Of a DNA stretch of 64,000 nucleotides, positions 978-52,119 are shown one piece after another. The translations under genes and the position numbers were made by a program. Under the pieces are notes generated by a model. That model saw only the letters and a program-made list of their open reading frames with translations. It ran no database searches and was not told the DNA's origin. This stretch comes from Asterias rubens (Eukaryota). Each line of letters begins with the position of its first letter. The first letter of the stretch is position 1. The DNA lies in assembly GCF_902459465.1 (NCBI RefSeq), contig NC_047079.1, positions 4,216,001 through 4,280,000 on the forward strand, in the 5' to 3' direction.

Positions 978-1504
978 TTAAGCAACAAATAGACTAGTTC
1001 AAATTTTTAAAAGAGAAACGTTATCAAAATCTCACAATCACTGAGTAAAATAGAAAAAGTTCACTTGTGAGAGTCCTGATAGGCTTCACAACCAGAACCA
1101 ATAAATGAAACTTAGTTTATAGTTTAATATGTTTTGTGCATTCGGGATAAAATGTTTGATGTTTTGTAAAGAAGGTCTACATTTAGCTAACAGTGCACTA
1201 ATGGACTTTTGGAAAAAACTGTTGTTATAATCAACGTCGTTAGACTGGTCTCAGTGGATACAATTGGATAAACGTGCAGTGACGTAAGCATTCTGTATCT
1301 GTGTTTTGATTGGTCTGAGGTGACGTTTGGCAGCTGCACTTTTGGTCGTCTGCATATGAATCTAGGTGAAAGGTGAAGATGGACGGTGGTTGACCTACGC
1401 CAGAGGCCATTCTCTGGCGTTATTCACGAACCTCGACCCGTGACGTCAGATATTCAGGCTACAAGGAAGTGTGACCTGTCAAGCATCAACCTCTTGAGGT
1501 TGCC

Positions 1505-4034
1505 CTACTTTTTCCACCCTTGATGGACCGTGACGTACTTCAGGAGGGGAGTCTGAAGGGTCTGCTCTGCGGCTGAGGCAATTTCTATCCCGTTGGTCCC
1601 TTGCTGGTAGAGCTGGCACACATTGTCTGTCGGCTCGATGGGATCTAACACGATAGGACTGTTTGGGGAAACATATAACAGTAATGAAAGTTTAATTGAA
1701 CAAATTATTTTAAGGAAATTTATATCTGAAGAAACTAAACCCTCAAAATTAAACAAACTGCCACGCCCTCTTTCTTGATTCAAAAGTTAGTGACAGAAAA
1801 ACACACTGTGTTTTTGTAACTAACTATACTGTATAGGTCATCCACCGACCTTTTATCAACAGCCAGGCCAAGTGTTGCACCTATTTGATTTGAGAACTGG
1901 CAGCCAGGTTATTCCACGCACTTATGGAGATCAGCTATGAAGCCTTCCATACTCTGGTTTCGCTTCCCGGTATTTTAAATTTGTGCAACAAATCTAATCT
2001 AATCATTTATTGTTTAAAGTGCACCGCATACAATTATCCCAGCACACTGTACATAGTGACAATAAAAGTTAATGTTAAAAAGTTGAACAAGAAGAGTAAA
2101 AACTCTATATTATAGTAAACAACGACTACCAACAACCATAAAGAGACAAATTTAAAATAAACCCAATGGCTGGGCACTTATAATTTTACTTCACTTACTT
2201 TTGCATTCCAAAGCGTGTAATTGCTTTTTGTGCCATTTCGGTGTAGATTTGATTGGATCCTGGCCAGCTAGTAACACGCAGTGCTGTCAACTTCGTCAAG
2301 ACCTCAAGGACGTTCTTCAACCCCTGGGCTTTGCTGAATTTAACGGGTTTCCCAGCCTTCTCCCAAAGGTGAATGGTGATCAGCTCCAGCCGGTAAGATT
2401 TCTTGAGTTTCTCGGGGAGGTAGTCATTCGCCCAGTACTTCACGAGACGTACGAGCTCCTTCACGTACCCAGGCTGGCTACCGACGAAGTTGACCTGATG
2501 TTCGGCAAGGGAACCAGAGTAGAAAACCCTGTCTTTGATGTCGTTAAGATACAGCATGGCAAGGAACATATCTGAATGATGAGCAGGTGAAGAAAGAGGA
2601 AAGTATGCTGTTAAAAATAATACAATAATATTGCTACATCGGTGCACCGATACGGTGTTCAAAGGTGCAAATGATTACAACAACTTTTAATTAAGAAATA
2701 AGGCCTCATCAAAAGTTACAATAGTATCGTCGTCGTCCTATGAGTCATGGCTGACCCTTTGTGACCATGTTATGATGTAGTTCCACTTCTGTCTATCCAG
2801 TGCAGATCGATAAGCAACGTTTATTGAAAAGCCCGTGAGTTCTTTGATTCCGTCTGTCCAACGAAGTTTTTGACGGCCACGTCGGCTACTACCTGCTACA
2901 CATCCTTGCACAATGATCTTCTCAAGGTTGTCCCCCTCTCTTCTGGATATGTGACCAAAGTACTGATTAAGCTTGTTTTTGTTAATTTTTGAGGACAATG
3001 TGGGTCTATCCTCTCCTATCAGGTTTCTAACAAAAACATTGGTCTTGTGCTCTTACCATGATATTCTCAGCATTCACCTCCAGCACCACATCTCAAAAGC
3101 GTTGATCCTGTTCCTGTCTGCTTTACCCACAGCCCACGTTTCAGACCCATAGGTGGCTATTGGGAAGACGAGAGCATTCATGAGTCGAATTTTGGTAGTT
3201 CTGGAGATCCCTCTGTCCTTCCAGATGTCAGTCAAGGAGATAGCTGATGTTCTTGCCATAACAATAGTATATACCACTTTAAAATTAAAAAATATCAATA
3301 TAATATTGTTTTTTTTAATATTCAAAATCATTTGCCCTATTCTCAATTTCCCCGTGACCATTATGAAATAAATAATCATAGATTCAAAATATTTCTTGAC
3401 ACGTAATTTAGCCGACTTACCTCGACCGGGGCCAGCACACTTGCTTGAAGTTGGTAGAAAATCGATGCTCATACACCTTGAGCCCACTCTGATGTTGAAA
3501 ATAACCAAGAACTCGTTCTTGCTTACTGCAGATACGGACGGCAGCCTCTTCAACGCCGTGTAGAGATTTTCGATGACGGCAGCCAGCTTGCGCTTGTATT
3601 CGCTCAGTCCGAGTGTTAAGATGGAGTCCAAGTCTGGTGGATTGATGAAGGCGATCAGATCGACATCAGAAAGGTCCTTAACCATGGTTCCTTTACCAAG
3701 GGATCCACCCTGCAGAAAAAAAACATTGGACCCATTAAATACTCACACTTAAACAATTTCCCGTGGAATTGTCGGGGTGAAGCTTGTCTGTTATATTGAA
3801 TATAATATTATGGATTGTATATTTTAACGTACACACCTTAACAATTCTATCAACGTTGAAACGTAGACCGCCCGATTTACAAATGCTCTGCACCGATAGG
3901 ACCACTTCATTGATAGCTCTTTTGCAGTCCCTGTCGAAATCCTCCGTCCCACGTTGAATATTCTCGTTATACCATGTCTCGAGACTGCTTGAATCCATGC
4001 ACCAAGGCTGTGAAAATCTCCCAGGTCCAGCCAT
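1505..4034 (-). CDS. OAS: OAS-like nucleotidyltransferase, copy A (2'-5'-oligoadenylate synthetase family, single domain, ~337 aa)
   Basis: Exons complement(3837-4034, 3421-3709, 2199-2571, 1505-1658) total 1014 nt, with GT-AG boundaries and consistent phases 0/1/2. Motifs: GGSLGKGT, SDVD plus IDFLP (three catalytic Asp), ELVRLVKYW, SYRLELITIHLWE, FSKAQG and PIVLDP. These match recalled OAS1 motifs (GGSSGKGT, SDAD, FDVLP, LIRLVKHW, YALELL, RPVILDP). The exon 3 acceptor is the least certain boundary. Confidence 0.9.
2728..3260 (-). mobile_element. 5'-truncated RTE-clade LINE in OAS-A intron 2
   Basis: Translates to RTE C-terminal motifs (TKIRLMNALVFPIATYGSETW, INAFEMWCWR, YFGHISRREGDNLEK, RRGRQKLRWTD) with a stop at 3074. 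It ends in a (GAC)n tail and is flanked by a 10-bp TSD, ACAATAGTAT (2718-2727 and 3261-3270). Confidence 0.9.
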
Positions 4035-4410
4035 TGCGAGTTGGTTTAGTTTATGAATCCTTCCAAGTTCAAATGCAGCTCTGGTCTGCTGAAATTCCAG
4101 GCAAATATTTGGGGGGTTTTAAAACTCCGATTTCACAACTGTGAGCGATTGTATCATGTGATTCCCCATATTTCTGACGATGATGAGAAATCATTTATAG
4201 AAATAATGTTAATCTGGACAACAGTCAAGTTAATTATTCATACCACCCTGCGTCACGCAAGCAATCTGATTGGACAATAACATTAAGCAGCTGCGTGATG
4301 CCGTTAATATTAACGTAGGTTGTGTATGTGGCCGTCGTCTTCGTGAGATGTTGGGGTTTCTGAACTGAACAAAAAAAACCGCTAGACTGGTACCCTGTCT
4401 TTATCTTTAA

Positions 4411-4936
4411 AGATGCTATAACAGATTTTTGGCCGATTTGACTCCAGAATTTTGATTTAAAATTCAACAGGTTTTTTGATGGGGGTCGAGAAAGTTACAA
4501 GCTTTCATTTGAGTCATTGCTCGAAAAAGTCCGCCAATTATTAGGAGCAGTGAAATAAAGTGCTCAAAATTAGTTTTTGTCGGGATCCCGACAATATATC
4601 ACGTGACCAATTCTTATGTGTTTTATGGGCACGTTCGTTTAGCTTCCCTGGGTTTACCCCGTTGTGTATCGGTTTTTTTTTCCAGGACGAACGTGGGTAA
4701 TTATCTACACACGCTCGTCCTGGAAAACAAAAACCGCCACACACCGGGGCTGACCCAGGGGAGCTAAACGAACGCACCCTATAAGAAACGTTTTACATTT
4801 TTGACATGGTTCCTGACCATTAAAAGTAAAAGTTAAACTTGTTTTCGTTAGAGCGGGTGATACTCTTTGAAATACCATTCACTCAAAAAAATCTATATTT
4901 TTTAATGTTTGGGGCCAAAAATCTGACATAGCATCT
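4411..4936. mobile_element. TTAA-target (Kolobok-like) MITE, family B
   Basis: TIRs AGATGCTATAACAGATTTTTGGCC / GGCCAAAAATCTGACATAGCATCT with TTAA on both sides. The homologous site in unit B has a single TTAA (12170-12173). Confidence 0.85.
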
Positions 4937-4983
4937 TTAAGGATCACACGGGTATTGTCTTTATGTATAGACGATGTGACCTC

Positions 4984-5318
4984 TGACGTCACTCGAAAAC
5001 CATAACATGATTCGCGCGCATGCAATCGTACCATAACTACGCATCTTTTTGCCCGGCGAAACATAACGTATACAGTGTTTTTTTCAACATAAAAACATAG
5101 GTCACATCATCTATACACATGTACGTCAGAATTAACTGCGAATATCCAGAACCAAAAAGACAATGTGTCTGACTGGGAGGTCAAAGGTGATTCATAGACG
5201 TGTGCTCAAATGCAGATCTCTGGCGTAATTCACGGGCCTTGAAGTGTGACGTCAGATGTTCAGACTAACCCAGTGGTGCGCTTTGGCCCAACCATAACTC
5301 AACAAACAGTTGACGTCA
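4984..5318. promoter_or_regulatory. Cluster of three perfect CRE palindromes in the OAS-A / hydrolase divergent spacer
   Basis: TGACGTCA at 4984-4991, 5247-5254 and 5311-5318. Homologous sites in unit B lie at 12223, 14832 and 14896 (12942 is a duplicated copy). Confidence 0.4.
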
Positions 5319-5944
5319 GTGCCTCAATATCTGTCCAATGAAATCATCGGGTTTGCATCACATGTTCTTCTCTGTATAAAGGTGCGCCCCTCTAAATAAA
5401 CGCCCATAGCATAGGCTATACAGTGAACAATGCTAAATATTCTAAAGTATACATGACAACACTATACTTAGAAGTCTAACAGCTTTTAACAGTAAAGGGA
5501 CAGTTATAGAATTTATTCTTGAACTTTAATCCTCTGCTCAATTGAACAATAATGGGGAGTCCTGGGCCCATCGAGTTATTCCCCCTCCAAGCCTTGTGCC
5601 AGCCGATTGTCTACCTTCCGCCCAGGTAGCAGTTAAAAGGTACAGTTCTTTTCAAAAATGAGAAGAATATAATATAGCAAGACAGTTTTCTCAAGCACAA
5701 AACCTACCTGGCAAATAAATACACACGTGGTGTTACCGCAAACCAAATAGTTATATAATAAGTCTAGTCTGGGTGAACTTGTTTGTTTACTAAGACTTTT
5801 GCTCTTTGCCTTCTGATTTAGAATTGCATGATCACTGTGTATTTGTGTCCCTGGCCGGGTATCAGGTTCGGTATTCACAGTGACTCACTGTAGCGTTAAC
5901 GTTCACCACTTTAATATTTTTACAAATACATCGGAAGTGTAAAA

Positions 5945-6087
5945 ATGGCGTTCATGAAAAATGCACTGTTAGTGTGTATAACAGCAGTGTTGGTTGTGTG
6001 CGTACCGTCTCTATGGACCAAGACGCCCCCTACACTTACGGCGGGAACTGTACAACCAGGATTCGAACCAGTGCTGAAGGTTTTCAG
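5945..6087 (+). pseudogene. Orphan copy (or alternative first exon) of exon 1 of beta-lactamase-domain hydrolase 1
   Basis: 143-nt ATG exon (MAFMKNALLVCITAVLVVCVPSLW...VLKVF) with a GT donor. It has 4 nt differences from 17089-17231. Promoter and intron-1 homology extend to about 6310, but no downstream exons occur before OAS-B. Confidence 0.75.
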
Positions 6088-8152
6088 GTCTGTTGTTTCA
6101 CCATTACCGGTTCTCTTAAGAGCCTCAAAAGGTTCCCCCGCTGTTATTCTATCTCAAAATCCTACTCACGTTTGGGGAGATTTTGCTTGGGTTTTCTCGT
6201 TTGTTTGATTACCTCAATTATTTCACAGTAACTGGTGATTTCAGTTGATCCACTCACTTCAAATTCTACTGCCATTGATTGCAGAGAGACACTCGTACAT
6301 GGCCATAAAATTACACGCTCAATTGCACAATTTAAAAAAAAAAAGCTAAAAGAAAAACAAAAACAAAAGAACACAAATCACTAATCACTGAAGTCAATTC
6401 AATCATTCGATTGAAAGAGACCATGGGCCCGTTTTCGGAGCTGCTTTTAAGCAGCTCTTAAAAGCAAAAAAATGGCTTAAGCACGAAAATAGCTCGCTTT
6501 ATTTTACACATGTTACAGGCAAAAAATTCATGCCATATAAATTGCTTGTGACTGGTATTTAGCTGTTGTTTACCTAGCATAACGAATTAGCTGGTAATCT
6601 GATTTTACTAAGCAACACTTAGTGCTTAAGCAGCTCTATAAAATATGGCCCAGGTGATGGCGGCGACTCCAGGAGTGCGCCCCCATTATAATTTGAGGAC
6701 GAGTGGGCCACGAACGCAAGTCTATGCCGAATGATGATGATGATGATTCGATTCAACTGAATCAGTATTATCAATCACACCCATTGATAAATCAATAAAT
6801 CAATAATGACACTATATAATCAATATGACATCGACCAATAGGTTGATCAGTTAAATCAACTGCCTCAAATAAATGCAAAGATTCAGATCTATCCAATTAA
6901 TCAAATCCGTTTGTCTAAAACACAAACTAGCAATGAAAATAAATGCCCCTTAAAACATAGGTTTAAAGTCTGAAAACTACCGTCGTTTGGTGCCCATTCA
7001 ACAGTGATGACTAAATAACACAATAATTCATAAAAATGAACATTACTTAATTGGTAGTAAAACAGTTGCTGACAGTGTAGGGCCTAAGCACTTTATTTAA
7101 TCCTCCATACATAAACTGGAAAAAAACTATAGAAAAGAAGTTTGAGATAGATCGGCCAACCCATGTGGGTCACTAAAAAATAGTGCAAAACCAATTAAAT
7201 ATTTTGCATTAAATCGATGCAAAGATACTTACTGAGCGATGAACTCAAAACGGGGAACTAGTTTTATTAATTTCTTATCAATAATGACACCTTTATAGGC
7301 AATGATAATTCATTGGGTGTTTTCTACACTCATCATCATCATCGTCACCAGACTGTGTCAGTTTTATGTAAATCTGTGATCTTCACAATTGTTTTCTTAC
7401 CAATTCTGTAACGTTCCTTTAGACAATGATCACTATCATATAATCCTCATCCATACGCAAATGTACAAACTAACTAATTATATATACCAACTAACTAAAC
7501 CATGTATGACTATAATTATAATTAAACGACGCACACTTACTTGCTATTATAACTATAATACCATCTTACTAACTGCATGCACTTTAGTTGGACCACATAG
7601 AAAAGCAATCATTCTTATGAGAATTAACTTATACCACATTACAATTTGCATTTTGAACATTAAATAATTATAGTGATTTTGAACGAAAAGCTGGCTGCCA
7701 GTGTTTGGGAAACAACATAAACACACTACGAAAACCATCCGCAGGAAAACAAGAACACCACTTTTCTTATCTAAAGAACCTCTATAATTTCAATAAGCAT
7801 TTGTTGCTAATACCATTGTAAACTTTTAATTTGACATGGCCTAAATATTAAATTAATCTCTGGGGTTTTCCTCCCACATCTAAAACTGAAACATCTTCAT
7901 GGTCTGCTCCCTATTGGGTTCTTGGTTGGTACATAGTAATTGTTCGTTTGTTGAGAGTCCTTTGTTCAACCAGAACCCCAAAATTAAACTTAGTTTAGTT
8001 TAGTATGTTTTGTGCAAGAGGGATAGGATGTTTGATGTTTTGTAAAGAAGGTCTGCAATAACTAACAATAGGCCTTTATACCATTAGACTGTTGTTCGGA
8101 ATCAACGTCAACAGAAGTGTGACCTGTCAGGCATGAAACTCTTGAGGTCGCA

Positions 8153-11100
8153 CTACCCTTTCCACCCTTGACGGACCGTGACGTTCTTCAGGAGGGGAGT
8201 ATGATGAAGGGTCTGCTCTGCGGCTGAGGCGATTTCTCTCCCGTTGGTCCCTTGCTGGTAGAGCTGACAGACATTGTTCGTCGGATTGGCTGGGTCCAAC
8301 ACGATCGGACTGAAAATAACAAAGAAATGAAAAGGTTTAGGATTTCAAGGTTTGTTATTTCCAAAGTAACAAATTGTACCACAGGCAATGTACATGTTCC
8401 AAATAATACAGTCAAGCCTGGAGGACAGCACAACAAAGATAAGAAGTTATAACATTTTTTTTATTTTACAAAATACTACCTGAAGGAATTCCTTCAACAT
8501 CAAGCTACATCTAGGCCTCAACTTATACGAACTTCTTGCTTCAAAAGTCAGTGATCGGAAACAAAACTCTGACAGAGAATAACAAACCAACACTGTGTTT
8601 CCGTCACAAAATAGTTTCATTGGACTTTATAATGTGAGAAACGTCATCCGCTGAAATCTTTATCAATAGCCAGGGTAAGTGTCGCGGCGTATTTTGACAA
8701 TTTTGGTGAACTTTTGGTTTTCATGTAGGCCTATTATTTTAACAAGTGATGGAATCCGAATTGCACTTGTTCAAACCACAATGGTAGCGAGAAAGTATTC
8801 CACGGCCGCGCTGCTGATACGCGGCTTACATGTAGTATTTCCAGGCTTCTCGGTGTGGCAGGAGTATCTGCCTCCCATTGCGAACTGCGTACACATTTCT
8901 TGTGATAGCGCCCTCTTTTGAATCATCCTCCTTCAGCCCATATTTTGTTTCCATTATGGCGGGACAGAATCTCAGATACACCTATGACACTAGACTTTTT
9001 AATCTCGTGCACATAGCGCGTGCGCACTAACATTTTGGTTGGCAAAATAATAAGGAAACATCAGACGCGTTTGCGCGTCTGTTTAGCGCACGATAGGGTC
9101 TGTACGCATGCGTGAATGTACTTAGCATAATTTCATGGGAGGGATCCATTGATGGGCAGTAAGTTCACCTACTTTATCATTTTAAGCTGTGTAATCGCAG
9201 TTTGTGCCAGTGTAGCGTCGTACAGACGGGATCCAGACCAGCTAATAACACGCAGTGCTGTCAACCTCGTCAAGACCAGTAGGACGTTCTTCAAACCCTG
9301 AGCTTTGCTGAATTGAACGGGTTTCCCAGCCTTCTCCCACAGGTGAATGGTGATCAGCTCTAGCCGGTAAGATTTCTGGAGATACACGGGGAGGTAGTCA
9401 TTCGCCCAGTACTTCACGAGACGGACCAGCTCCTTCACGTACCCGGGCTGGTTACCGACGAAGCTGAGCTGATGTTCGGCAAGGGAAGCGGAGTAGAACT
9501 CCCTGTCATGGTTGTCGTGAAGCTGCAGCATGGCACGGAACATATCTGAGTGAGCTGGCGGTATTAAAGGAAACAAGAAAACATCGATTTACTTATGATT
9601 AATATTGGTGCACCCTCTCCATCCAATCTGATGGTGTTTAAAGGTACAAAGGACAACAGCGTTGCCATAATACTCTTAACACTTACATAATTTATAAATA
9701 AAAATATATACAAACGCAGCATCAAATTGCTACGTAATAAATTCCAAAAACAGTCACTCTCTTGATCCCCTTTTTAGACTTAAGTGTTTAATTTTTGCCT
9801 CAAAATGTTTCTTGATGAATGACTTGGGCTTTCAACAAACCGACTAACCTCGACCGTGGCCGGCACAATTGTCTGAAGTGGGAAGAAAATCGACATTCAG
9901 ACACCTTCTGCCCACTCTGATGTTGAAGTTGACCATGAACTCATTCTTGCTGACATTAGACACAAACGACAGACCCGTCATAGCTGAGTAAAGATCCCGG
10001 ATGACGACGGCCAGCTTGCGCTTGTATTCGGCTGGTCCGAGTCTGACGATGGGGGCCAGGTTTGGTGGATTAATGAAGGCGATCAGATCGACATCAGAAA
10101 GGTCCTTCACCATGGTCCCTTTACCAAGAGAGCCACCCTTCAATCAATCAATAAATCAATCAATCAGTCAATCAATCGATCAATCAATCAATCATGCCAT
10201 GCTAATGTATTTGCTTAAGTGTTAATTTTGGGTTTTGTTTCAAATCCTAGCTACTGACCTATTTTTGTTGTAAAAGTTTTTCAATTAAATTCAATTTAAT
10301 TCAATTCAATTCAATTCAAAAACTTTAATCATCCTTTGCAGGCAATAACAATAGCAGACCAGCTCCATATAAAAAGTAAATTTGGTCTCATGAGACCAAA
10401 ACTATTTTAGCATGTAAAATCCCCTTAACCAGTTATGATAGTATACCTAAACCATAGACGAAAATTATTAATTTTACTCATTTCTCAAAAACTACAGCAC
10501 CTCAGTAAGTAAACTTTCAAGGGAAGCTTTCTTCTATCATAATCTTTAAACTGTATAAGTTTAATGTAAATCTGTGGACACTGTTTTTTGTTAGGAAAAA
10601 GCACATATACCCTTTAAGCTAAAGATGAAGGGGAATGACAAAATCCAGTTTTGTAATGTAGGCCTAGCTATTTTCCAAAAACAGAGTGAATAAAGAAACG
10701 ATTATAATTTTATGTGAGTGAGGAAAAACTAAAAAAACGTCCAACAGTGTTTCTATTACCCGTCCAGGACAAAATGAATTAATGTTTTAACATCTAAAAT
10801 ATCCGACGAGAAAAAATGGGTCCTCTTCAATTTTGTTGGTTCGACTGACTTTTTCAGAGCAAAAATTGAAACATCTTTTCAGAGCAAAATTTGAAAAATG
10901 TTTCAAATTTTGCTCTGAAAAAGTCAGTCGAACCAACAAAATTGAAGAGGACCCATTTTTTCTCGTCAGATATTATGGATTTCAAAAACTATGAATCTCA
11001 TTTCAATGAGGAATTATTTCGAGAAAATATCTCACGCCTAATAAGATAATGGCTGTAATGATGAGGCATACGCACCTTCAAAATTCTGTCAACATTGAAA

Positions 11101-11273
11101 AGGAGACCGCCCGATGAACAAATCGTCTGCACCGATCGGACCACTTCATCGATAGCTCTTCTGCAGTCCCTGTCGAAATCCTCCGTCCCACGTTGAATAT
11201 TCTCGTTATACCATGTCTCGAGACTGCTTGAATCCATGCACCAAGGCTGTGAAAATCTCCCAGGTCCAGCCAT
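8153..11273 (-). CDS. OAS: OAS-like nucleotidyltransferase, copy B (~338 aa)
   Basis: Exons complement(11076-11273, 9849-10137, 9173-9545, 8153-8309) total 1017 nt. Exon sizes equal copy A (198/289/373) except the last exon, which is 3 nt longer. Motifs GGSLGKGT, SDVD, VDFLP, LVKYW and PIVLDPANPTNNV are intact; no stops or frameshifts. Confidence 0.9.
10798..10974. repeat. Near-perfect 76-bp inverted repeat (foldback/MITE-like) in OAS-B intron 1
   Basis: Arms 10798-10873 and 10899-10974 differ at 2 positions. The 25-nt spacer repeats the inner end of the arm. Confidence 0.9.
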
Positions 11274-11898
11274 TGCGAGTTGGTTTAGTTTATGAATCCT
11301 TCCAAGTTCAATGCAGCTCTGGTCTGCTGAAATTCCAGGCAAATATTTGGTGTTTTTTTTTAAACTCCGATTTCACAATTGTGAGCGATTGCATCATGGG
11401 ATTCCCCGTATTTCTGACGATGATGAGAAATCCTTTATATAAATTATGTTAATCTGTACATCAGTAAACAGTCAAATTAATTATTCATACCACTCCTGCG
11501 TCACGCAAGCAATCTGATTGGACAATAACAATATAAGCAGCTGCGTGATGCCGTTAAAATAAAAGGGACACACCGGTGTGGCGGTTTCAACTTTCCGCTG
11601 TGTTCAGTTTTCCGAATGACCAAATACGGTAGCATTACGTCATGCGATGCCTGCGCACAGCAAGCGAAAGTAGTCCATTTTTAGTGCCGTATTGAGTCAG
11701 CCGTTACCCTCCGGTAGCTGTCATGGCGGCGTCCACGAGTCGAGTACAACTAGCGGCAAACGCGCGCGCGTGGATCGTATGAGTTGTTTTTTATGCAAGC
11801 AGAGTGTGACCTGCCTAAAGTAGTACACATGTAAAGATGGGGCAAGAGATTATGTGACTACACAGAAAAGAATGTGGCCGTCGTCTTCGTGAGATGTT

Positions 11899-12113
11899 TA
11901 GTCTTGAAGTCAAGACTGTAATTGTTAAGCGCGGTGTGTAGTTACAGCGCGGTGTAGCTACGGGGACGATACACACACCCTCGATCCCAGTATGTGTGTG
12001 TGTGTTAGAGCTGCCTCGCGCTACCTACGACTGTTGCATGTGTAACATCGCACTGTGACTGTTGCATGAAAGGCAGACAAATAGGTAGCGCCTAACGACT
12101 TGTCATCAAGTTT
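11899..12113. mobile_element. Unclassified insertion with a terminal hairpin; a reverse copy of its end lies at 1-100
   Basis: Absent from unit A; possible 5-bp TSD ATGTT; hairpin AGTCTTG-AAGT-CAAGACT. Positions 11900-11996 are the reverse complement of about 1-100. Confidence 0.55.
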
Positions 12114-12428
12114 ATGTTGGGTTTTTTTAACTGAAAAAAAACCGCTAGACTGGTACCCCGTCTTTATCTTTAAGGATACGCACGGGTATTGTCTTTATGT
12201 ACTGCATAGACGATGTGACCTCTGACGTCACTCGAAAACCATAACATGATTCGCGCGCATACTGCCGGGCAAAACCTTTGTGTTTTGGCAGCCAGCTTTA
12301 GTGTATGCAATCGTACCATAACTACGCATCTTTTTGCCCGTCGCATCTTCTAAACACATGTAAGTCAGAATTAACTGCGAATATCCAGAACCATAAAGAC
12401 AATGTGTCTGAATGGGAGGTCAAAGGTG

Positions 12429-14801
12429 AAATCGAAGTACTACACTAACCACCTCTCATCCGCTGACACTAGACTGTGTTTAAGACGCTTAACACGTTGT
12501 TAAATCGCTCTGTTGTCTCCCTACCTTCGAGTGACTCAATGAAGTCACTTAGTAACCGTTTTTGCAACTACTTCAAGGAGAAGATTACTAAAATCAGGCA
12601 ATCCATCAGATCTTCTCTAAGTGACCCAAATGTCCAACAGGCCGAATCACAACACCTGACTGAACACCGCACTTCATCTGGTGACCGGGGTTTCTCTGCT
12701 GCAGGGCCTACTTTGTGGAACCGACTACCCTACAATATACGCCATTCATCTTCATTAGCAGCCTTCAGAAAAGCTCTCAAAACCTATTTATATGACTCTT
12801 AATTTTGTTGTATGTTTATCTTGTTTTTTCTTTCTTTCTGTGTAAAGCACTGTGATACATTTTTTGTAAGAGCGCTTTATAAATGCCTTTGTAGTATAGT
12901 ATAGTATAGTATCCATAGACGTGGGCTCAACTGCAGATCTGTGACGTCAGATGTTCAGACTAATCCAGTCGTGCACTTTGGCCCAGCCATAACTCAACAA
13001 ATCAGGCAATCCATCAGATCTTCTCTAAGTGACCCAAATGTCCAACAGGCCGAATCACAACACCTGACTGAACAGTGTTGCCCTAATGTCCAGCCCCAGA
13101 GCTCACAGACTTCTCTCTCCTGAGCCCAGATGAGGTTGCTAAGCTTGTCATGAAGTCTCCCAGTAAATCATGTGGTCTCGACCCATTGCCCACATGGCTC
13201 CTCAAGAAGAACTTGGACATTATGCTGCCTGCTCTGTCATCAATTGTGAACACATCCCTGTCTGCTGGATCATTTCCTTCTTCCCTGAAACCAGCCATAG
13301 TCACACCCATTCTGAAGAAACACAACTTGGACTGTAACAATCTTAAGAACTTCAGACCTGTTTCTAATTCAGCGTTTTTGTCTAAGATCATTGAAAAAGC
13401 AGCTCTGTGCAGTGTAAATAACCATGTTTGGAGTAATAATCTCACTCAAATGTATCAGTCTGCCTACAGGTCCGGCCACAGTACGGAGACGGTTCTGCTG
13501 AGAGTCAAGAGTGATATCATGTCTGCTCTAATTGACAATCGGCGGGCTGTCTTCCTGGTGTTGCTGGACCTGTCGGCAGCTTTCGACACAGTTGACCATA
13601 GTGTCTTCTTAGGCAGGTTGTCTAATATCTTTGGCATTAGTGGTAGTGTATGTAAATGGTTTGAGTCATACCTTTGTAATCGCTCCAATAGAGTGAAAAT
13701 TGCTGGTGCTTTGTCTGATCCACAATCTGTTAACTTTGGTTTGCCACAAGGCTCTGTAATTGGCCCCCAATCCTTTTCTTTGTACACTCATCCTGTTGCA
13801 AATATAATCAAGTGCTACAAAAATGTTATGTTTCACTTTTATGCAGATGACACGCAATTGTACATTTCGTTTGACCCTCGTAATCAATGTGAAGTTAATG
13901 ATGCCCTGTCTTCCCTTTCCAACTGTATTCTGAGCATAAAGAAGTGGATGGCAAATAACATGCTTCAGTTAAATGAAACTAAAACAGAGTTCTTCATTGC
14001 TGCAGGTCCCTGTTTCACGGACTTACTATCTTCTGTGACACTTAAGGTTGGCTCTGAAGTAATTCTTCCGGCTTCAACAACAAAGAACCTCGGTGTTGTA
14101 TTCGACCAATCAATGCGCATGTCAAACCAGGTTTCTTCTATATCCAGTGCTGTCAATGTTCACCTTCGCAATTTGTCTCGCATAAGATCTTTCCTCACTC
14201 AATCTGCCTGCCAGGACGCAGTAAGAGCAATTGTCACATCAAGGATCGACTACGCCAACTCTCTGCTTGCAGGTCTCTCCTCCAAAGACACTAAACGGCT
14301 TCAACGTCTACAAAACCGGGCTGCAAAGCTCATTTTCCAGGCCAAGAAATATGACCACGTCTCTCCACTTATCCGTGAACTTCATTGGCTCTGTATTTCA
14401 AAACGCATCCAGTTCAAACTTCTCACAATTGTTTTTAAATGTATCACCGACACAGATGCTCCGCTATATCTCAAAGAACTCATTAATCCGTATGTTCCAA
14501 CTAGAGAAGGACTGCGATCTGCCAAAGATAACAGAGTTCTGATCATCCCCCATTCTCGCACTTCATCTGGTGACCGGGGTTTCTCTGCTGCAGGGCCTAC
14601 TTTGTGGAACCGACTACCCTACAATATACGCCATTCATCTTCATTAGCATGCCTTCAGAAAAGCTCTCAAAACCTATTTATATGACTCTTAATTTTGTTG
14701 TATGTTTATCTTGTTTTTTCTTTCTTTCTGTGTAAAGCACTGTGATACATTTTTTGTAAGAGCGCTTTATAAATGCCTTTGTAGTATAGTATAGTATAGT
14801 A
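12429..14801 (+). mobile_element. Young 5'-truncated L2-clade (CR1 group) LINE with an internal duplication and deletion
   Basis: 511-aa RT ORF at 13150-14685 (LLDLSAAFDTVDH, GLPQGSVIGP, YADDTQLY, NLGVVFD, HVSPLIRELHWL, FSAAGPTLWNRLP) and a (TAGTA)n tail. The empty site is visible in unit A (AAAGGTGA|TTCATAGAC, about 5188). Confidence 0.92.
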
Positions 14802-15834
14802 TTCATAGACGTGGTCTCAACTGCAGATCTGTGACGTCAGATGTTCAGACTAATCCAGTGGTGCACTTTGGCCCAGCCATAACTCAACAAACAGTTGACG
14901 TCAGTGCCTCAACATCTGTCCAATGAAATCATCGGGTTTGCATCACATGTTCTTCTCTGTATAGGTGCGCCCCTCTAAATAAACGCCCATAGCATAGGCT
15001 ATACAGTGAACAATGCTAAATATTCAAAAGTATACATGACAACACTATACTTAGAAGTCTAACAGCTTTTAACAGTAAAGGGACAATTATAAAACTTACT
15101 CTTGAACTTTAATCCTCTGCTCAATTGAATAATAATGGGGAGTCCTGGGCCCATCGAGTTATTCCCCCTCCAAGAAAGACCCCTACACCAGTGAAATAAA
15201 TGTATTGAAATGAATGAAATTAATTGTCCAAACGTCCGAGCATCAATCTTGACAAAAAACCAACAACCTCTAATCATAAATACCTCAGACAGTTTCGTTA
15301 TTTCTATTGGTGGAGAGCGCGGCACGAGGGGTGTTTAAACCTTTGATAATGACCAGTGTTTATAACCGGTTGTGAGCGGGACAGTTTATTCATTCCTATT
15401 GGTCGAGAGCAACGGCTGGAACAGTTGTGCCACATCACGCGATACGCGCGACGCGCAGAGCAATCTCCTTACAACGAGTTGTTTACCCGAGGGCCTTACC
15501 ATTTCATAGCTGGAGGGGTGTTGTGTTGAAAGAAATCATTGAACAATTATAATTTTTGCATTTATTTTACCTTTTTGACCAAAAAGTGTTGATGTTTTTT
15601 GACCGAAATTTATGAATGGGAATCTAAGTGTGTTGAATCGGTTTTCAAATAGTGATTTAAACCCCCGCCAGGGCCTGGTTGTTGATAACATTATCAAGAA
15701 CCAGGCCTCGTTGGGTTTAAACCACTAGTTGAAAACCTCTTCACCACACATTGATTCCCTTTATAAGAGTAGAACAATTAGTTATATAGAGCATAGTGTC
15801 ATCCACTCCTATAAATATACCTACTTCTTTCTAC

Positions 15835-15885
15835 ATTCTCCTGACGATGACTAACTCAATACAAGCTAGTCGAAACGTTGAGAGT
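15835..15885 (+). ncRNA. Minimal type I hammerhead ribozyme of Penelope-like-element type
   Basis: ATTCTC-CTGACGA-T-GACTA(13-nt loop)TAGTC-GAAA-CG-TT-GAGAGT. Intact CUGANGA and GAAA core, 5-bp stem II, 6-bp stem I (one G-U pair), palindromic ACGU stem III, predicted cleavage after GUU (15879). Confidence 0.75.
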
Positions 15886-15940
15886 TCTTAAAAGAACTCA
15901 CTCCGCGGTTACTAGTGGAGTTAATAAAGATCATCTTTAA

Positions 15941-16322
15941 AGACACTGGACACTATTGGTAATTGTCAAAGACCAGTCTTCTCGCTTGTCTGTATCTCAA
16001 CATATGCATAACATAACAAACCTGTGAAAATTTGAGCTCAATCGGTCGTCGAAGTTGCAAGATATTAATAATGCAAGAAAAACCACCCTTGTCACACGAA
16101 GTTATGTGCGTTTAGATGGTTGATTTCGAGACCTCAAGTTCTAAATCTGAGGTCTCGAAATCGAATTCGTGGAAATTACTTCTTTCTCGAAAACTATGGC
16201 ACTTCAGAGAGAGCCGTTTCTCACAATGGTTTTAACGATCAACCTCTCCCCATTACTCGTCACCAAAGTAAGTTTTTTTGCTAATAATTATTTTGAGTAA
16301 TGACCAACAATATCCACTGCCT
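15941..16322. mobile_element. MITE family A copy
   Basis: Same TIRs, TTAA flanks; absent from the homologous position in unit A. Confidence 0.85.
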
Positions 16323-17088
16323 TTAAGCTTAAGTGCCAGCCGATTTTCTAACTTCCGCCCAGGTAGTAGTTAAAAAGCAGGACAGTTCTTTTTAAAATAA
16401 TGAGAAGTCTTCCGAAAAATCCGAAAGTCTACTCCGCGGTAAAATAATATAATTTGTATAGCAAGACAGTTCTTTAAAGACCAAAATCTACACGGCAAGT
16501 AGATATACACTAGTCATACCGCAAACCAAATATTATACATTAAGTCTAGTCTGGGGTCAACTTTATAGAGCTGCTTAAGCAAAGAAATTGCTTAAGCACG
16601 AAACGAGCTCGCTTATTTTTCACATGTTACTGGCAAAAATTTCATGCCATATACATTGCTTGTGACTGATATTTAGCTGTTTGTTTACTAGGATTTGCTG
16701 CTCTTTGCCCTCTCATTGTGATAAAGAACTGCACGATCACGGTGTGTTTGCGTCACTGAGTATAGCAGTGGCCACTGTAGCGTGAAAGGTTCACCCACTA
16801 TAATAATTATTAATAATTAATAATTAATAATTTCTCAAGCACAAAACCTACCTGGCAAATAAATACACACTTGGTGTTACCGCAAACCAAATAGTTATAT
16901 AATAAGTCTAGTCTGGGTGAACTTGTTTGTTTACTAAGACTTTTGCTCTTTGCCCTCTGATTTAGAATTGCATGATCACTGTGTATTTGTGTCCCTGGCC
17001 GGGTATCAGGTTCGGTAAATACAGTGACTCACTGTAGCGTGAACGTTCACCACTTTAATATTTTTACAAATACATCGGAAGTGTAAAA

Positions 17089-20000
17089 ATGGCGTTCATG
17101 AAAAACGCACTGTTAGTGTGTATAACAGCAGTGTTGGTTGTGTACGTACCGTCTCTATGGACCAAGACGCCTCCTACACTTACGGCGGGAACTGTACAAC
17201 CAGGATTCGAACCAGTGCTCAAGGTTTTCAGGTCTTTATAGCCTTTTGTTTCACTATTACCGGTTCTCTTTGGAGACTCAAACGTTCTCCCACGATACAA
17301 TTCTCAAAATCCTACTTTACAGTCATGTTTTGGGTGATTTTGTTTGGGTTTTCTTGTTTGTTCGGTTAACTCCATTATTTTACAGAAAATGGTGATGTGG
17401 TTTGACCCACTCTTTTAATTAGTATGTATTATATTCTTTGTAAACCATCATTGATTGCAGAGAGACACCCGTACATGGACAAAAATGGCTGTTTAAGAGT
17501 CTGCACATATAAAGTTAAAGGCAATGGACACTATTGGTAATTACTCAAAATAATTATTAGCATAAAACCTTACTTGGTAACGAGTAATTGGGAGAGGTTG
17601 GTAGTATAACACATTGTGAGAAACGGCTCCCTCTGAAGTAACGTAGTTTTTGAGAAAGAAGTAATTTTCCACGAATTTGATTTCGTAACCTCAGATTTAG
17701 AATTTGAGGTCTCGAAATCAAGCATCAGAAAGCACACAACTTCGTGTGACAAGGGTGTTTTTTCTTTCATTATTATCTCGCAACTTCGATGACGGATTGA
17801 GCTCAAATTTTCACAGGTTTATTATTTCATGCACAGGATGAGATAAATCAAGTGAGAAGACTGGTCTTTGAAAATTACCAATAGTGTCTACTGTCTTTAA
17901 CAACAAAACATTTTGAAATTTCTTGGATTTAAAACGAACCATGCTAAGTAAAGTGAAACATACAAGCTGGCAAATGCCTGACTACCTCACGCCAGCTGCC
18001 TTACGCTATACATGAGGCCCCCAGTGTGTGTGACCTTTTGCCGATAATTGCGCTGATTTTCGCCCACATCAAGTAAGGATGTTTAAACACACCATACTGG
18101 ATGTGTTGACAACTTGTTTTTACATTAACGGCAGTGCCCCTGCTCCTCTTTGCACATTTTTTTTTTCAGGGAAAATTTTGCCAAGGGAGTGGAGTCGCCA
18201 ACAGGGGGCAGCGCATTCTCTGTTTACTACAAAGGGGCAAAGGTCATTGACCTATGGGGAGGTTACGCCGACACCGAGGCTCTAAGGCCATGGCGGGAAG
18301 ATACTATGGCCATTGTTTACTCGTCGACTAAAGGTAATCAAAAATTGCATTACTAAACTAGAGCAAAGGCAATTAATGTACACCTTTGGTTTTAGAGCCG
18401 TTTGGTTGTTTTGGTCCCCAAAAAGATGTATACAAATGTCACTTTGTGAAGTTTTTAAAAAGGCGGTAGCGTGTATCAGATTTCACCGAAACTGTGTCTC
18501 TGTGTGCATAATTCCGTGAGGGCGCCCTTTATTTAAAACTTGTCACTTTGGTTGTGTGTGATCCAGGAATGGCCGCCACTTGCATTGCTCTACTAGCGGA
18601 TAGAGGTCACATTGACTACGACAAAACCGTCGCATCTTATTGGCCAGAATTCGCTCTGAACGGCAAAGAGAACATCACAGTGCGCATGCTCCTAAATCAC
18701 GAGGTATAAGTATGATTTCGTTGCGTTTCTACTGCCACGACAGAAACAAATAAGCATTTATAAGAACTTGTTACCACTCTCTGTAACTGATATGCCGATG
18801 GCTGCAAAAAGGCGTACAGTGACACTCTGTGCCCAAACCATTCAGATATCATAGGGAAATCTGTCAATTGGAGATTATCCCCCCCCCCCAATTGGAAACC
18901 ATGGGCTGATAGAAAGAGGGAGCTATCAGAGGATGTTTTTACGCAGATCGCCGTGATGGGGACAGAATCTGTCACACAGCCATTATTAGTAGGTTTATTT
19001 TGGTCGTAGTTAGGCCTTAATAAAGGTACATGCCTTTGAATAGAAGATTGATCAAGACGCATTGAGGTTGATGTTTTGGATGTCTGGTTGTTGCATTCAT
19101 TAATTGTGAGAAGTTTCTGTCGTAGTGAGCGTCTCTCTGTATTTTTTATTTCGTGCATTATTATTCCAGGGAGGATTGTCATACACGGATGGACCAATCA
19201 GCTTCGAGCAACTCGCAGACCAGGATGTACTGGGGCAGCTGTTAGCTAAAGAAGCTCCAAAGTGGGAACCAGGCAGTGCCCACGGGTACCACGGAATGAC
19301 GTTTGGTCTCTACGTCAGCCAACTTCTACGGAGAGCTGATCCAAAGCACAGGACACTCGGGCAGTTCTTCAAGGAGGAAATAGCCCAAACTTTTGGTAAA
19401 TGTTGGGTTTATTAATTAACAATATTAAATCTTGATTGGGGTTCCAAATACTACTTTGGGGCATGTCCGGTGGTTAATTGGGGGTTGGGGCATCCTGCGC
19501 TTGATCGCAGGGTCGGGTTCGAATGCCACTTAGAGGAACAGTAGCATATAGTGTAGACTTGGTTTCAAACAGGACTGGGAAAGCCCCGAGTATACAGAGG
19601 AAAAACTTCAAGGTATTATTGATCCCGATGCTGTTATATACTTCATGTATATGACGTCATAAGCTTGAACAGCGCCCCCACTGGGGTTAAAAGAAGAGTT
19701 ATCATTGGCTGAGAATTGTGCAATACTGGGGTATGCGTCTAGAGTGCGTTGCGTCTAGAGTGCGTTTTATGCGACCCCAACCAAAGCCCAACCGACTCAA
19801 CAAGTCGGTTACCGGTTGGTCTGAACAGCATCGATCTGTTTGTAAGTTAGGCCCTATCGCATTTGTATTACAAAAGTACTTTACGGTTAGTTATTAAAAT
19901 CGTCTATATCTTTCCCTTTTTCAGATGTAGATTTCCACATAGGACTGCCCTTAGAGGTCTACCACCGCGTAGCTAGACCTCCGGCTGTAACAGCCTTGTG

Positions 20001-21761
20001 GCAGACCCTATTCAAGGGGCTTACCAGCCCGTTAAACAGACAAGTCATGTGGGCCATGGCTACCGGGAAAACAGACTTCCTGAAAGTTCTCAATATAGAA
20101 TCAATGACACAGGTAAACTAAACCTAACCAATTTCAAGTTGATGTAATTTTTGGTTTAATAGTAGGGGAGGTCTGCTCTACCAGCCAGGCTTCTGATGAG
20201 TGATACCAAAGACTACATTTGTAAAGGGGGTAGCCCTGTTTCAGCCCACAATTGTGACCCACACCTTGAAGTTGCCTTCAGACCTTGTGTGTCTGGCGAC
20301 TTGCATAAACAACTTGTAAAAAAAATTTAAAACAGAATTTAAAAAAATCATAATGAAAACGATCGATTTAATGAAGCAAGGGAAGATCTGCCTGAGCAAA
20401 ACAATATAAACAAATTACCTTTCTCAAAATAACAACCACAGGGGAAACTGACTAATTAAAAGTTACCTTTAGTATGATGTTTTTGCAAATAAAATAAGAC
20501 ATTATCTAATCCCGTTACAGCCCAACGTACCACACAGAGTCACCATGGTCAAGTGGACTTGCAATCACAAGGTTGTTGGCTCGAATCCTACCAAGCTAAC
20601 CACTGATTTCACAACGACTATAGAAAAAGTGTCTTATAAACTCATATTTCTAGTAATTTCCACAATGACTAGAGAAGTGTCTGCTTGTTCTGAATCAGAT
20701 TTCATGATTTAATGACGTTAACCAATGATTGTAGTACAATCACAAGGTTTTGGGCTCGAATCCTACCAAGCTAATCGCTGATTTCACAATGACTAGAAAA
20801 TGTGTCTTCTTGCACAGTTACCGAGGAATCACAATATCTTGATTTTGTGGAATTCATGGCCGTTAAATCAATGTCTTTATGAGTTGTTGCCAGCTTGGTG
20901 TTTATATCCCCAGCGCGGGAGTTTGCCGGAGTTGTGGTGGTTAATATCATACTTTGTGTTTCATTGGAACCAGGCGGAGCACTTTTTGAATCCAGAAGTT
21001 CTAGCCCTCGAGCAGCCGTCTGCATCCGGCATCGGAACGGCCCGGGCCATCGCTAAGGTGTACGGGATGATGGCAAACGGAGGAACAACCAGGGACGGTC
21101 GAAAGTTTCTCTCGGACGGTCTGATCAAGAAATTTATAGGAGAGGCTGAGAAAGTTGCCACAATGGACAGAACCATTGGGCTTAAGATGCTCTTTAATCT
21201 TGGATTCATGATCACTGATGAGGTAAGCTTCAGAGCAAACTAAGTCCATAACAACAAAGATTCAAAACTCTGTATTCGAAATGGTGACCTCGCTTTTGTA
21301 TTAAATGGGTTCACAAGAAGAGGTTTGTTGTTGTGGTGAGATGTTTTTTGTTTGTTCGGTCTAGTTTATTTTTTTCATCTCCTTCTTTGCGTTTACGGTT
21401 TTAGTTTATTTTTTTTATATATATTTTTTAAGATACATTATTTCAGCCACAAAGGTACTTTTGTCCGGACCAAGAATAATTTGTACATGTTCAGTCGTTG
21501 TATTTATTTTTTGTTTCTGTTACAATAACACAAGCGTTGACATGATTTTGAATTCATTTTGTCTTCTTGGCTTTCCAGGGGGAGCAACAATTTGGCCATC
21601 CTGGATCGGGTGGTGCGCAGGGGCGTGCCGATCCAAAATGGCGGATCGGTATGGCATACATAACGAGTTATCCGACCCCCTTCAGTATGGGAGACGACGA
21701 ACGTTTCCTGACTCTTGAAAAAGCAACCTACGAGTGTGTCAAGAAGTTGGAGGCAAAGTAG
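17089..21761 (+). CDS. Beta-lactamase domain-containing serine hydrolase 1 (class C beta-lactamase / family VIII esterase fold, lact-2-like), ~429 aa
   Basis: Exons 17089-17231, 18170-18333, 18567-18703, 19170-19395, 19925-20112, 20974-21222, 21579-21761 total 1290 nt, in phase. Hydrophobic N-terminus; SxxK motif (YSSTK); HGYHG; FGHPGSGG. Confidence 0.9.
17519..17896. mobile_element. MITE family A copy (reverse), hydrolase 1 intron 1
   Basis: TIRs and TTAA flanks. Confidence 0.85.
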
Positions 21762-22189
21762 ATGCATCTAAAAGATGGGGAGTGGACTGAAAGAAGCCCT
21801 TGATAATTGGTAGTCTTGGTGCAAGACGTTTCTCGTTTACCTTTCCCGCACAGTGCGGTCAACACATCAATAGAGCCGGGCCCGCCACGACCACCCGTAT
21901 ACACACGTCTTGCACCAAGACTAGATGATTGGAAACAGACAGTAATTTGTTGGACATCATAAAGCGACCGCAACAAAATTGGGCTACTTTATACACTTCC
22001 GGTTTTTACTGGGGCATATTTTAGTGGTTTTTTTAGTGGTGTCCAAAAGTTTGTTATCAGTATCTAGTTTTGTTGTGTTGCACATAATGTCATTGTCTTG
22101 CACGGTTTTAATAAATAAAAAAAATTAAAATATATATATTTCTTCTATGTATTTTACTAATTCGCCAATAAATCAGGCAAGCTGTTTAA

Positions 22190-22571
22190 AGGCGCTGGAC
22201 ACGTTTGGTAATAATTTTATTGTCAAAGACCAGTTTTCTCACTTGGTGTATCTCACATAAGCATAAAAAACAAACCTGTGGAAATTTGAACTCAATTGGT
22301 TGTCACAGTTGCGAGAGAATAATGGAAGAAAAAGACACCCTTGTCGCACAAAGTTGTGTGCTTTCAGATGCTTGAATTCGAGACCTCAGCTGAGGTCTCG
22401 AATTCAATTCAAATATTTCAGTGATAAATTACTTCTTTCTCAAAAACTACGTTACTTCAGAGGGTATGGTATATTTTATACCATCAACACTGAGCTCCCC
22501 ATTACTCGTTACCAAGTAGGTATTTATGCTAAAGATTTGTTTGGGTAATTACCAATAGTGTGCAATGCTTT
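22190..22571. mobile_element. MITE family A copy
   Basis: Degenerate TIRs, TTAA flanks. Confidence 0.8.
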
Positions 22572-23112
22572 TTAAATACAGAAGCTCCATTTTGAGTCCT
22601 TGGATCCATGTTAGTGTGTTCTTGTACGTTTTTACCAAAACGATTTTTATTTAAGTAGATATTTGCGACAAATCTCAGCTCTTCAACTCGAATTCGAATT
22701 CCATGGGCGTATACAAATTGACACTGCACACTTTGTAGATACCACCGGAGGGGAAAGAACAAAAATATCAAAATTTACACCTGATGGTGTTTAAATAACA
22801 CAAGTTTCTGCCAACAGAAGTGTTATTTTAACACCCTATTATTGTGATAGTTTTCATTGTTCTCTTGAGAGTATGTGTCAACACCCATTGTCACTTTTAC
22901 TACCACCAGTGTTGGCACTAAACACATGAACTCTATTGCCCAATCCTCACTGCACAACATCATCGTTGTATGTGGTGGTCTGGTCACCGCTAACTGTAGA
23001 CTTAATTTCAAGTCTGAGATCGTGATATTCTCTGCATCAGCCACGAAAAAACCCTCCCAGATTAGCTATGATCACGCGCCCACGGGAGGGCGCTATTTCA
23101 GGCAATGATGGA

Positions 23113-36851: not shown

Positions 36852-36912
36852 AAAAGAAAAGCAGATTTACACTGAATGTTTTTTATGGCGGTATACAGCC
36901 TACATCCTTTAA

Positions 36913-37301
36913 AGGCAGTGGACACTATTGGTAACTACCCAAAATAATTATTAGCATAAAACCTTACTTGGTAATGAGTACATGTAATGGGGAGAGGTCG
37001 ATAGTAATTATTGTGAGAAACGGCTCCCTCTGGAGTAATGTAGTTTTCGAGAGAGAAGTTATTTTCTACGAAGTTGATTCCGAGACCTCAGATTTAAAAT
37101 TTGAAGTCTCGAAATCAAGCATAAGAAATCAAGCATAAGAAAGCACACAACCTCGTGTGACAAGGGTGCTTTTTTCTTTCATTATCTAGCAACTTCAACG
37201 ACCGATTGAGCTCAAATCTTCACACGTTTGTTATTTTATGCATATGTTGAGGTACACCAACTGTGAAGACCAACTGCAATTACCAATAGTGTCCAGTGTC
37301 T
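36913..37301. mobile_element. MITE family A copy
   Basis: TIRs and TTAA flanks. Confidence 0.85.

Positions 37302-52085: not shown

Positions 52086-52119
<34 letters not shown>

Follow-up and report, generated by a model that had tools for sequence, protein, structure and literature searches.

What does an oligoadenylate synthase (OAS) signal to in an animal that has no RNase L? Conserved gene neighbors are among the few leads to such a target, and one candidate neighborhood is found in the sea star Asterias rubens. RNase L is limited to jawed vertebrates (PMC10400998), and OAS-bearing invertebrates do not have it (PMC6307210). The original prediction for this locus, made from its sequence alone, likewise took RNase L as not known from invertebrate deuterostomes. 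The Asterias genome encodes the ribonuclease domain of the RNase L/IRE1 type (PF06479) at a single locus. The stretch analyzed here, called the window, comprises 64,000 nucleotides of contig NC_047079.1 (C19:4216001-4280000 in the notation used below) and belongs to the 417.6-Mb assembly of 150 contigs that was searched as the genome. In the window, OAS genes lie head-to-head with genes for predicted serine hydrolases. The original prediction read this arrangement as a duplicated cassette that pairs a synthase with an effector-like hydrolase.

The window is probably the meeting point of two divergently transcribed arrays, one of five OAS genes and one of three hydrolase genes, whose boundary underwent a tandem segmental duplication that copied no working gene pair.

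A duplicated boundary between two gene arrays

Comparison of the window with itself reveals two collinear homologous blocks, 1050-6309 and 7933-17485, the second of which is broken by transposon insertions. Each block (units A and B) contains a minus-strand, four-exon OAS gene (OAS-A, OAS-B) facing the same plus-strand hydrolase promoter and first exon (exon 1A, exon 1B). The OAS and hydrolase start codons are 1,911 bp apart in unit A and 5,816 bp apart in unit B, confirming the distances and the head-to-head layout originally described. The hydrolase promoter and exon 1 occur exactly twice in the genome. The two copies of exon 1 (143 nt) differ at 4 positions, the 259 bases 5' of the ATG differ at 7, and divergence between the units over the spacer and exon 1 is 3-9%.

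The duplication took only exon 1 of the hydrolase. Exons 2-7 are absent between exon 1A and OAS-B, and the next hydrolase exon after exon 1A begins at 18170, 12 kb away and past the antisense OAS-B. The duplicated segment ends downstream of the OAS gene on one side and ~220 bp into hydrolase intron 1 on the other. The proposed duplicated cassette is therefore real as duplicated DNA and fails as a synthase-effector pair, since unit A contains the hydrolase as exon 1 only.

On the OAS side, exon 3 has 16 matches genome-wide, and this minus-strand array (C19:4.18-4.23 Mb) accounts for five. OAS-A and OAS-B share 77% amino acid identity, and the array's other three genes, located upstream of the window, reach only 35-55% against OAS-B; OAS-A and OAS-B are therefore a young pair. 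Coordinates of the features are collected in Table 1.

Table 1. Features of the Asterias rubens window (positions counted from its first nucleotide)
Feature	Position	Strand	Description	Basis
OAS-A	1505-4034	-	349 aa; exons 4034-3837, 3709-3421, 2607-2199, 1658-1505; PF10421 on exons 3 and 4	
Spacer A	4035-5944		1,910 bp; OAS-proximal 4035-4313, dispersed repeats 4407-5190, hydrolase-proximal 5687-5944	self-comparison
Exon 1A	5945-6087	+	apparent orphan copy; 47 codons plus 2 nt, GT donor intact; no exons 2-7 after it	
Junction between duplicated blocks	6309-7933			self-comparison, transcript contigs
OAS-B	8153-11273	-	341 aa; exons 11273-11076, 10137-9849, 9554-9173, 8309-8153; PF10421, weak PF01909	
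Spacer B	11274-17088		5,815 bp; homologous to spacer A; LINE 12476-14891, SINE-like repeat 15918-16328	
H1	17089-21761	+	429 aa; exons 17089-17231, 18170-18333, 18567-18703, 19170-19395, 19925-20112, 20974-21222, 21579-21761; PF00144	
H2	23663-27809	+	431 aa, 7 exons	gene model
H3	30584-35041	+	431 aa, 7 exons	gene model
SINE-like copies	576-987, 15918-16328, 17515-17900, 22185-22572, 29560-29937, 36909-37305			
SINE-like copies, further	39316-39703, 46605-46846, 50476-50863, 53057-53442, 62399-62842			

Transcripts of the duplicated region

Contigs of four RNA-like runs were placed on positions 1400-7399. Such assembled contigs report presence only, and rare variants are dropped from them. 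A contig of run X3 has a joint at 1658/2199, which is the predicted intron 3 of OAS-A, and further X3 contigs cover OAS-A exon 3 and exon 1, the latter as far as 4077, and one of these shows zero differences. OAS-A is therefore a real gene that is transcribed and spliced in an independent sample.

The long contigs on hydrolase exon 1 come from X4 (1,793 nt) and X5 (1,372 nt). Both continue ~1,220 nt past the donor site and therefore represent spliced mRNA. Unit A carries T5962, G6000, C6028 and G6076 at the exon 1 variant sites. At 5962 and 6000, the entire X4 and X5 contig depth is C and A, the letters of unit B, and X4 also has unit-B letters at 5811, 5874-5876 and 5897. X4 and X5 are from a second labelled organism and are hence less telling on the use of exon 1A. 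The X1 contig at 6006-6088 has two differences, the number expected from unit B. Zero contigs of the four runs, in which rare variants drop out, match exon 1A. Within these limits of contig data, exon 1A appears to be an orphan that is not used, and exon 1B is the one from which H1 is transcribed. RNA-like runs X1-X5 contain 0.18-0.32 of the words sampled from the H1 region, which is close to the ~27% of that region that is exonic.

The junction between the blocks is also transcribed. Positions 6620-7034 are unique in the genome and have a transcript contig depth of ~680 in X4, 36 in X3 and 12 in X5. This stretch may form a long 3' untranslated region (UTR) of OAS-B, the stop codon of which is at 8153, or else a transcript of its own. 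The adjoining 7034-7400 is a dispersed repeat with hundreds of copies.

The OAS genes

The OAS models were assembled from reading frames and splice signals. In both, every internal junction is GT/AG and there are zero internal stops. The OAS1_C domain (PF10421) is detected on exon 3 of OAS-A (E = 3e-17) and of OAS-B (E = 1e-16) and follows the nucleotidyltransferase (NTase) core, the order that defines the OAS family. A search of the PDB matched OAS2, OAS1, OAS3 and OASL, with OAS2 and OAS1 reaching E = 7e-20. Exon 2 alone had no match in the PDB, and the full-length ortholog P0177 was needed; it is 84% identical to OAS-B and aligns with OAS1 over residues 33-304. The catalytic residues of this ortholog align with porcine OAS1 (GGSSGKGT...SDADL...FDVLP), including the three catalytic aspartates. 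In the Asterias proteins, the G-S motif and the aspartate triad are found as GGSLGKGT...SDVDL followed by SIDFLP (OAS-A) or NVDFLP (OAS-B). No signal sequence is present in the OAS proteins, and they are predicted to act in the cytosol as sensors or synthases, with the catalytic triad complete. OAS orthologs also match the PADLOC oligonucleotide-cyclase models and Escherichia coli CdnC. This match to models of bacterial cGAS/DncV-like nucleotidyltransferases (CD-NTases) is the expected deep homology.

Between OAS-A and OAS-B, nonsynonymous divergence (dN) is 0.13 and synonymous divergence (dS) is 0.27, a ratio of 0.49, with dS uneven along the gene (exon 1, 0.10; exon 2, 0.44). With the ortholog on contig L005 as outgroup, the branch dN is 0.097 for OAS-A and 0.029 for OAS-B. 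On these values, OAS-A evolves faster and is still constrained. A reverse-transcriptase fragment is present inside OAS-A intron 2 (about 2738-3300).

The outgroup contig is a 7.5-kb sequence of GCA_014845345.1 that contains two tandem, intronless ortholog copies of OAS-A/B (L005:468-1892 and L005:6475-7517). Their four exons are contiguous, and the 5' and 3' flanks are as in the Asterias window. The pair looks like a retrocopy that was duplicated afterwards. The second copy has KVNFLP at the position of the third catalytic Asp, and hydrolase exon 1 is absent between the two OAS copies on this contig.

The hydrolase genes

H1-H3 are intact, with canonical splice sites throughout, and each begins with the hydrophobic stretch MAFMK(N/S)ALLVCITAV... 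The original prediction of three intact paralogs with hydrophobic N-termini holds, with seven exons in each; H2 and H3 lie beyond 21761, where the cluster had been taken to end. The nucleophile motif S-x-x-K is SSTK in H1 and STTK in H2 and H3, and GYH and GHPGSGG are present in all three. The genes thus show PF00144, S-x-x-K, the Tyr and a C-terminal H/W-x-G box, the set by which enzymes of the family VIII carboxylesterase/class C beta-lactamase-like type are recognized. Over its full length, the Patiria ortholog can be aligned with bacterial family VIII carboxylesterases (E = 3e-63 with 5GMX; further matches are 5GKV, 8J5V, 3ZYT and 7Y3Z), and the positions of S-x-x-K, G-Y-H and G-H-x-G-x-G-G are kept in the alignments with 5GMX and 5GKV. 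NCBI labels this group of proteins as beta-lactamase domain-containing protein 2-like.

The predicted fold is that of serine beta-lactamases, which makes the hydrolases relatives of the bacterial family VIII carboxylesterases and not proteins with the metallo-beta-lactamase fold. The latter fold includes nucleases and phosphodiesterases. The animal hydrolases have an extra hydrophobic N-terminal segment of ~30 residues, whose sequence fits a cleaved signal and a membrane anchor alike. They are predicted ester or amide hydrolases with the N-terminal helix as a putative anchor. The hydrolase orthologs P0070 and P0069 have 0 matches among 5,027 PADLOC defense models, and PF00144 is their sole domain.

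Synonymous sites are saturated between H1 and H2/H3 (dS > 2, ratio 0.12), and H2 and H3 are a young pair (dS 0.21). One further hydrolase paralog is found elsewhere in the genome, at C19:7.93 Mb, unlinked to OAS. The far flank of the hydrolase array, downstream of H3, is occupied by a large minus-strand gene at 41600-57900 that encodes an FHA domain (57561-57884) and has numerous exons of coiled-coil-like type. Within this gene's span, on the minus strand, an Rfam histone 3' UTR stem-loop is called at 51989-52034 (35.7 bits, with a gathering threshold of 34). It has no histone reading frame nearby and adjoins a poly-A/T run, and is therefore probably part of a repeat.

Conservation of the neighborhood

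A divergent OAS/hydrolase neighborhood is real in three sea-star genera of two orders, Asterias, Acanthaster and Patiria. In Acanthaster planci (DF978579.1), four plus-strand hydrolase genes at 577.6-604.7 kb are followed by a fifth gene, encoded on the minus strand, whose ATG is at 613,396. At least four OAS genes occupy the plus strand beyond it, and the first starts at 620,843, leaving a divergent junction of 7.4 kb with no gene called within it. In Patiria miniata, a minus-strand hydrolase array starts at 5,345,470 and plus-strand OAS genes begin at 5,362,896, 17.4 kb away. A fructosamine-kinase-like gene lies between the two, and further Patiria OAS genes are present at 5.06-5.17 Mb.

The Acanthaster annotation contains an irregularity at 599-613 kb of DF978579.1 (L006:16578-23617, L007:1-2554), where hydrolases of 431 aa (plus strand) and 424 aa (minus strand) overlap by ~4 kb. 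Coding exons 1-3 of the minus-strand gene map to 611.2-613.4 kb, and no minus-strand exons are found below 606.5 kb. The overlap is probably due to a UTR or an error in the gene model.

In a tree in which this minus-strand Acanthaster gene is represented by exons 1-3, the hydrolase copies group by species. The arrays therefore grew after the species split, from one gene already near OAS. The EMP24-type and FN3K genes of Asterias lie elsewhere, at C19:8.43 Mb and on C5, so the wider neighborhood has been rearranged.

Outside the sea stars, the linkage is not seen. The brittle star Amphiura has its main hydrolase array and its OAS genes on separate chromosomes; one hydrolase paralog shares a chromosome with OAS genes, 23 Mb from the located OAS gene. 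In the brachiopod Lingula, the two families are on different scaffolds. The original prediction listed missing adjacency in related genomes among its possible refutations. Acanthaster and Patiria show the adjacency, so a refutation on that ground fails, while Amphiura and Lingula limit its reach. Within Asterias, the other 11 of the 16 OAS exon 3 matches are located at C19:4.86-4.92 Mb (seven), at C19:10.12-10.14 Mb (three) and on C21 (one), and none of these loci has a PF00144 neighbor.

The spacers

Spacer B is longer than spacer A because of insertions of a long interspersed nuclear element (LINE) and a repeat resembling a short interspersed nuclear element (SINE). Much of the extra length comes from the LINE, a young insertion that contains a 511-aa reverse-transcriptase reading frame and two 335-bp direct repeats that are 98.8% alike (12668-13001 and 14557-14891). 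The SINE-like repeat, ~390 bp long, has at least 11 copies in the window, in both orientations and at 70-89% identity. In 15600-16400, Rfam gave no hammerhead ribozyme match, either at the gathering score or at E up to 1, and the microRNA models yielded just weak hairpin matches far below threshold. In spacer A, contig depth is very high at 4400-5200, which is typical of repeats.

A bidirectional-promoter pair is usually defined as two head-to-head genes with start sites within about 1 kb. In unit-A coordinates, transcript contigs extend to 4077 from the OAS gene and to the equivalent of 5561 from the hydrolase, which leaves at most 1.5 kb between them. From gene to gene, the head-to-head gap measures 1.9 kb in unit A, whose hydrolase side is the orphan exon, and 5.8 kb in unit B with its LINE and SINE-like insertions; Acanthaster has 7.4 kb and Patiria, with another gene in between, 17.4 kb. 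Comparison of the Asterias spacers with the spacer of Acanthaster and the upstream regions of Patiria gave a marginal 29-bp match as the sole similarity.

The core of the interferon-stimulated response element (ISRE), GAAANNGAAA, has 0 matches in 1-36 kb and 8 in the whole window, with 6.7 expected. Sites resembling NF-kB sites number 4 in the window, at the chance level of 3.9. A palindromic NF-kB-like site, GGGATTCCCC, is present at 11398-11407, 125 bp upstream of the OAS-B start codon, and has no exact counterpart at the matching place of unit A.

Origin of the arrangement and alternative readings

In the history that we favor, a tandem segmental duplication across the array boundary would have given rise to OAS-A as a second OAS gene and, in the same event, copied the spacer and hydrolase exon 1. 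OAS-A has been preserved intact, is transcribed and spliced, and its protein evolves at about three times the rate of OAS-B. The copied exon 1, having no nearby splice partner, would be an orphan by-product, with H1 transcribed from the downstream exon 1. Later LINE and SINE insertions would have lengthened spacer B from about 1.9 to 5.8 kb. The hydrolases would adjoin the OAS genes through inherited sea-star gene order, without demonstrated functional coupling.

Several observations weigh against this account. The spacer, hydrolase exon 1 and OAS exon 1 (3-10% divergence) are closer between the units than OAS exons 2-4 are (dS 0.22-0.44). That the 5' part of the unit is more similar than the 3' part points to one simple duplication being insufficient and to gene conversion or a mosaic history. 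Acanthaster retains the divergent junction, and Patiria does so in a looser form, whereas the hydrolase array has different genes on its far flank in Asterias (the FHA-domain gene) and Acanthaster (EMP24 and ankyrin genes); such retention may reflect some constraint on the linkage. Exon 1A may also be used at a low level, since contigs lose rare variants.

Tandem duplicates are a recognized source of assembly error, and a collapsed or expanded haplotype could imitate a duplication. No observation in favor of such an artefact was found here, and it is exceedingly improbable, as the OAS copies differ at 23% of residues and carry different transposon insertions, and OAS-A contigs with 0-2 differences, splice joint included, are found in an independent 2014 run. 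Exon 1A could also serve H1 as a functional alternative promoter and first exon, spliced 12 kb over the antisense OAS-B to 18170. It retains its ATG, an open frame and the GT donor, and its upstream 259 bp are 97% identical to unit B. The transcripts make this quite improbable, since the X4 and X5 contigs carry unit-B letters, the difference count of the X1 contig fits unit B and no contig fits unit A; just as doubtful is the consequence that H1 would gain a second regulatory input beside OAS-A.

The functional reading of the duplicated boundary is that the shared spacer drives both genes as a co-regulated sea-star defense module, with the hydrolase acting downstream of or alongside the OAS product. 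It draws on the divergent neighborhood in three genera and two orders, on an OAS effector left open by the confinement of RNase L to jawed vertebrates and the single PF06479 locus here, and on the presence of both OAS-A and H1 transcripts in X3 and X5. These points are outweighed, and the module is unlikely. One hydrolase exon was duplicated and no gene pair. With its serine PF00144 fold, the hydrolase is closest among solved structures to carboxylesterases, and it matches no PADLOC defense model; to our knowledge, no member of this fold is known to act on nucleotides, and the enzyme class supplies no biochemical reason for a link to OAS. There is no linkage for most OAS exon matches (11 of 16) or for the hydrolase paralog at C19:7.93 Mb, nor between the two families in Amphiura and Lingula. 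The spacers range from 1.9 to 17 kb, are laden with transposons and share no detectable sequence across species, and in Patiria the fructosamine-kinase gene intervenes. Neither Asterias spacer has an ISRE core, and the NF-kB-like sites are at chance level. Finally, H1-type contigs are found in all four runs and OAS-A coding exons in two of the four. Less probable again is the specific version in which the divergent junction, retained in the three genera despite different far flanks of the hydrolase array in Asterias and Acanthaster, would mark a sea-star-specific, co-regulated antiviral module that employs a predicted membrane-anchored serine hydrolase to replace RNase L or to control the OAS product. 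The linkage is real and sea-star-wide, yet no evidence found here ties the two enzymes functionally.

For the search for an OAS target in animals without RNase L, the lead is narrowed. The neighborhood is genuine and common to three sea-star genera, and the duplicated cassette lends it no extra weight because one hydrolase exon alone was copied. The OAS and hydrolase genes themselves are already annotated in public records. In our literature searches, no report of the conserved sea-star OAS/esterase-like neighborhood or of the orphan exon was found, nor any functional study of an animal serine beta-lactamase domain-containing protein 2. Oligoadenylate is unmentioned among the matches listed for sea-star terms.

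Comparison with known systems

The cyclic-oligonucleotide-based antiphage signaling system (CBASS) is composed of bacterial operons of a CD-NTase and an effector. As in CBASS, the sea-star synthase is homologous to CD-NTases and a hydrolytic enzyme is encoded next door. Unlike a CBASS operon, the sea-star genes are separate, divergent transcription units. A CBASS synthase is accompanied by an effector of known class or one with a nucleotide-sensing domain; the sea-star neighbor has no such domain and matches no CBASS effector model. Pairing wherever the synthase occurs, another mark of CBASS, is missing at most OAS loci of the same genome and recurs at one junction in three sea stars.

The OAS side is closer to the vertebrate OAS clusters (OAS1, OAS2, OAS3, OASL and the rodent tandem Oas1 expansions). 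Both have the NTase core followed by OAS1_C, the GS...DxD...D residues, lineage-specific tandem duplication and raised protein evolution in young copies. The sea-star genes differ in encoding single-domain proteins of 340-350 aa in a genome without RNase L. The hydrolases share with the bacterial family VIII carboxylesterases (5GMX, 5GKV, 3ZYT, 7Y3Z) full-length homology, S-x-x-K, the Tyr in G-Y-H and G-H-x-G-x-G-G; unlike them, the animal proteins have the hydrophobic N-terminal ~30 residues and are encoded by seven exons in tandem arrays.

The duplication itself resembles other boundary-spanning segmental duplications that leave orphan first exons. One end of the segment falls within intron 1 of the neighboring gene, so that exon 1 and its promoter alone were copied, and the copy is not seen in transcripts. 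It differs from them in that exon 1A has stayed free of damage, with 4 substitutions over its 143 nt. The locus is a useful example of a boundary duplication that yields an orphan exon alongside a new immune-type gene that evolves fast.

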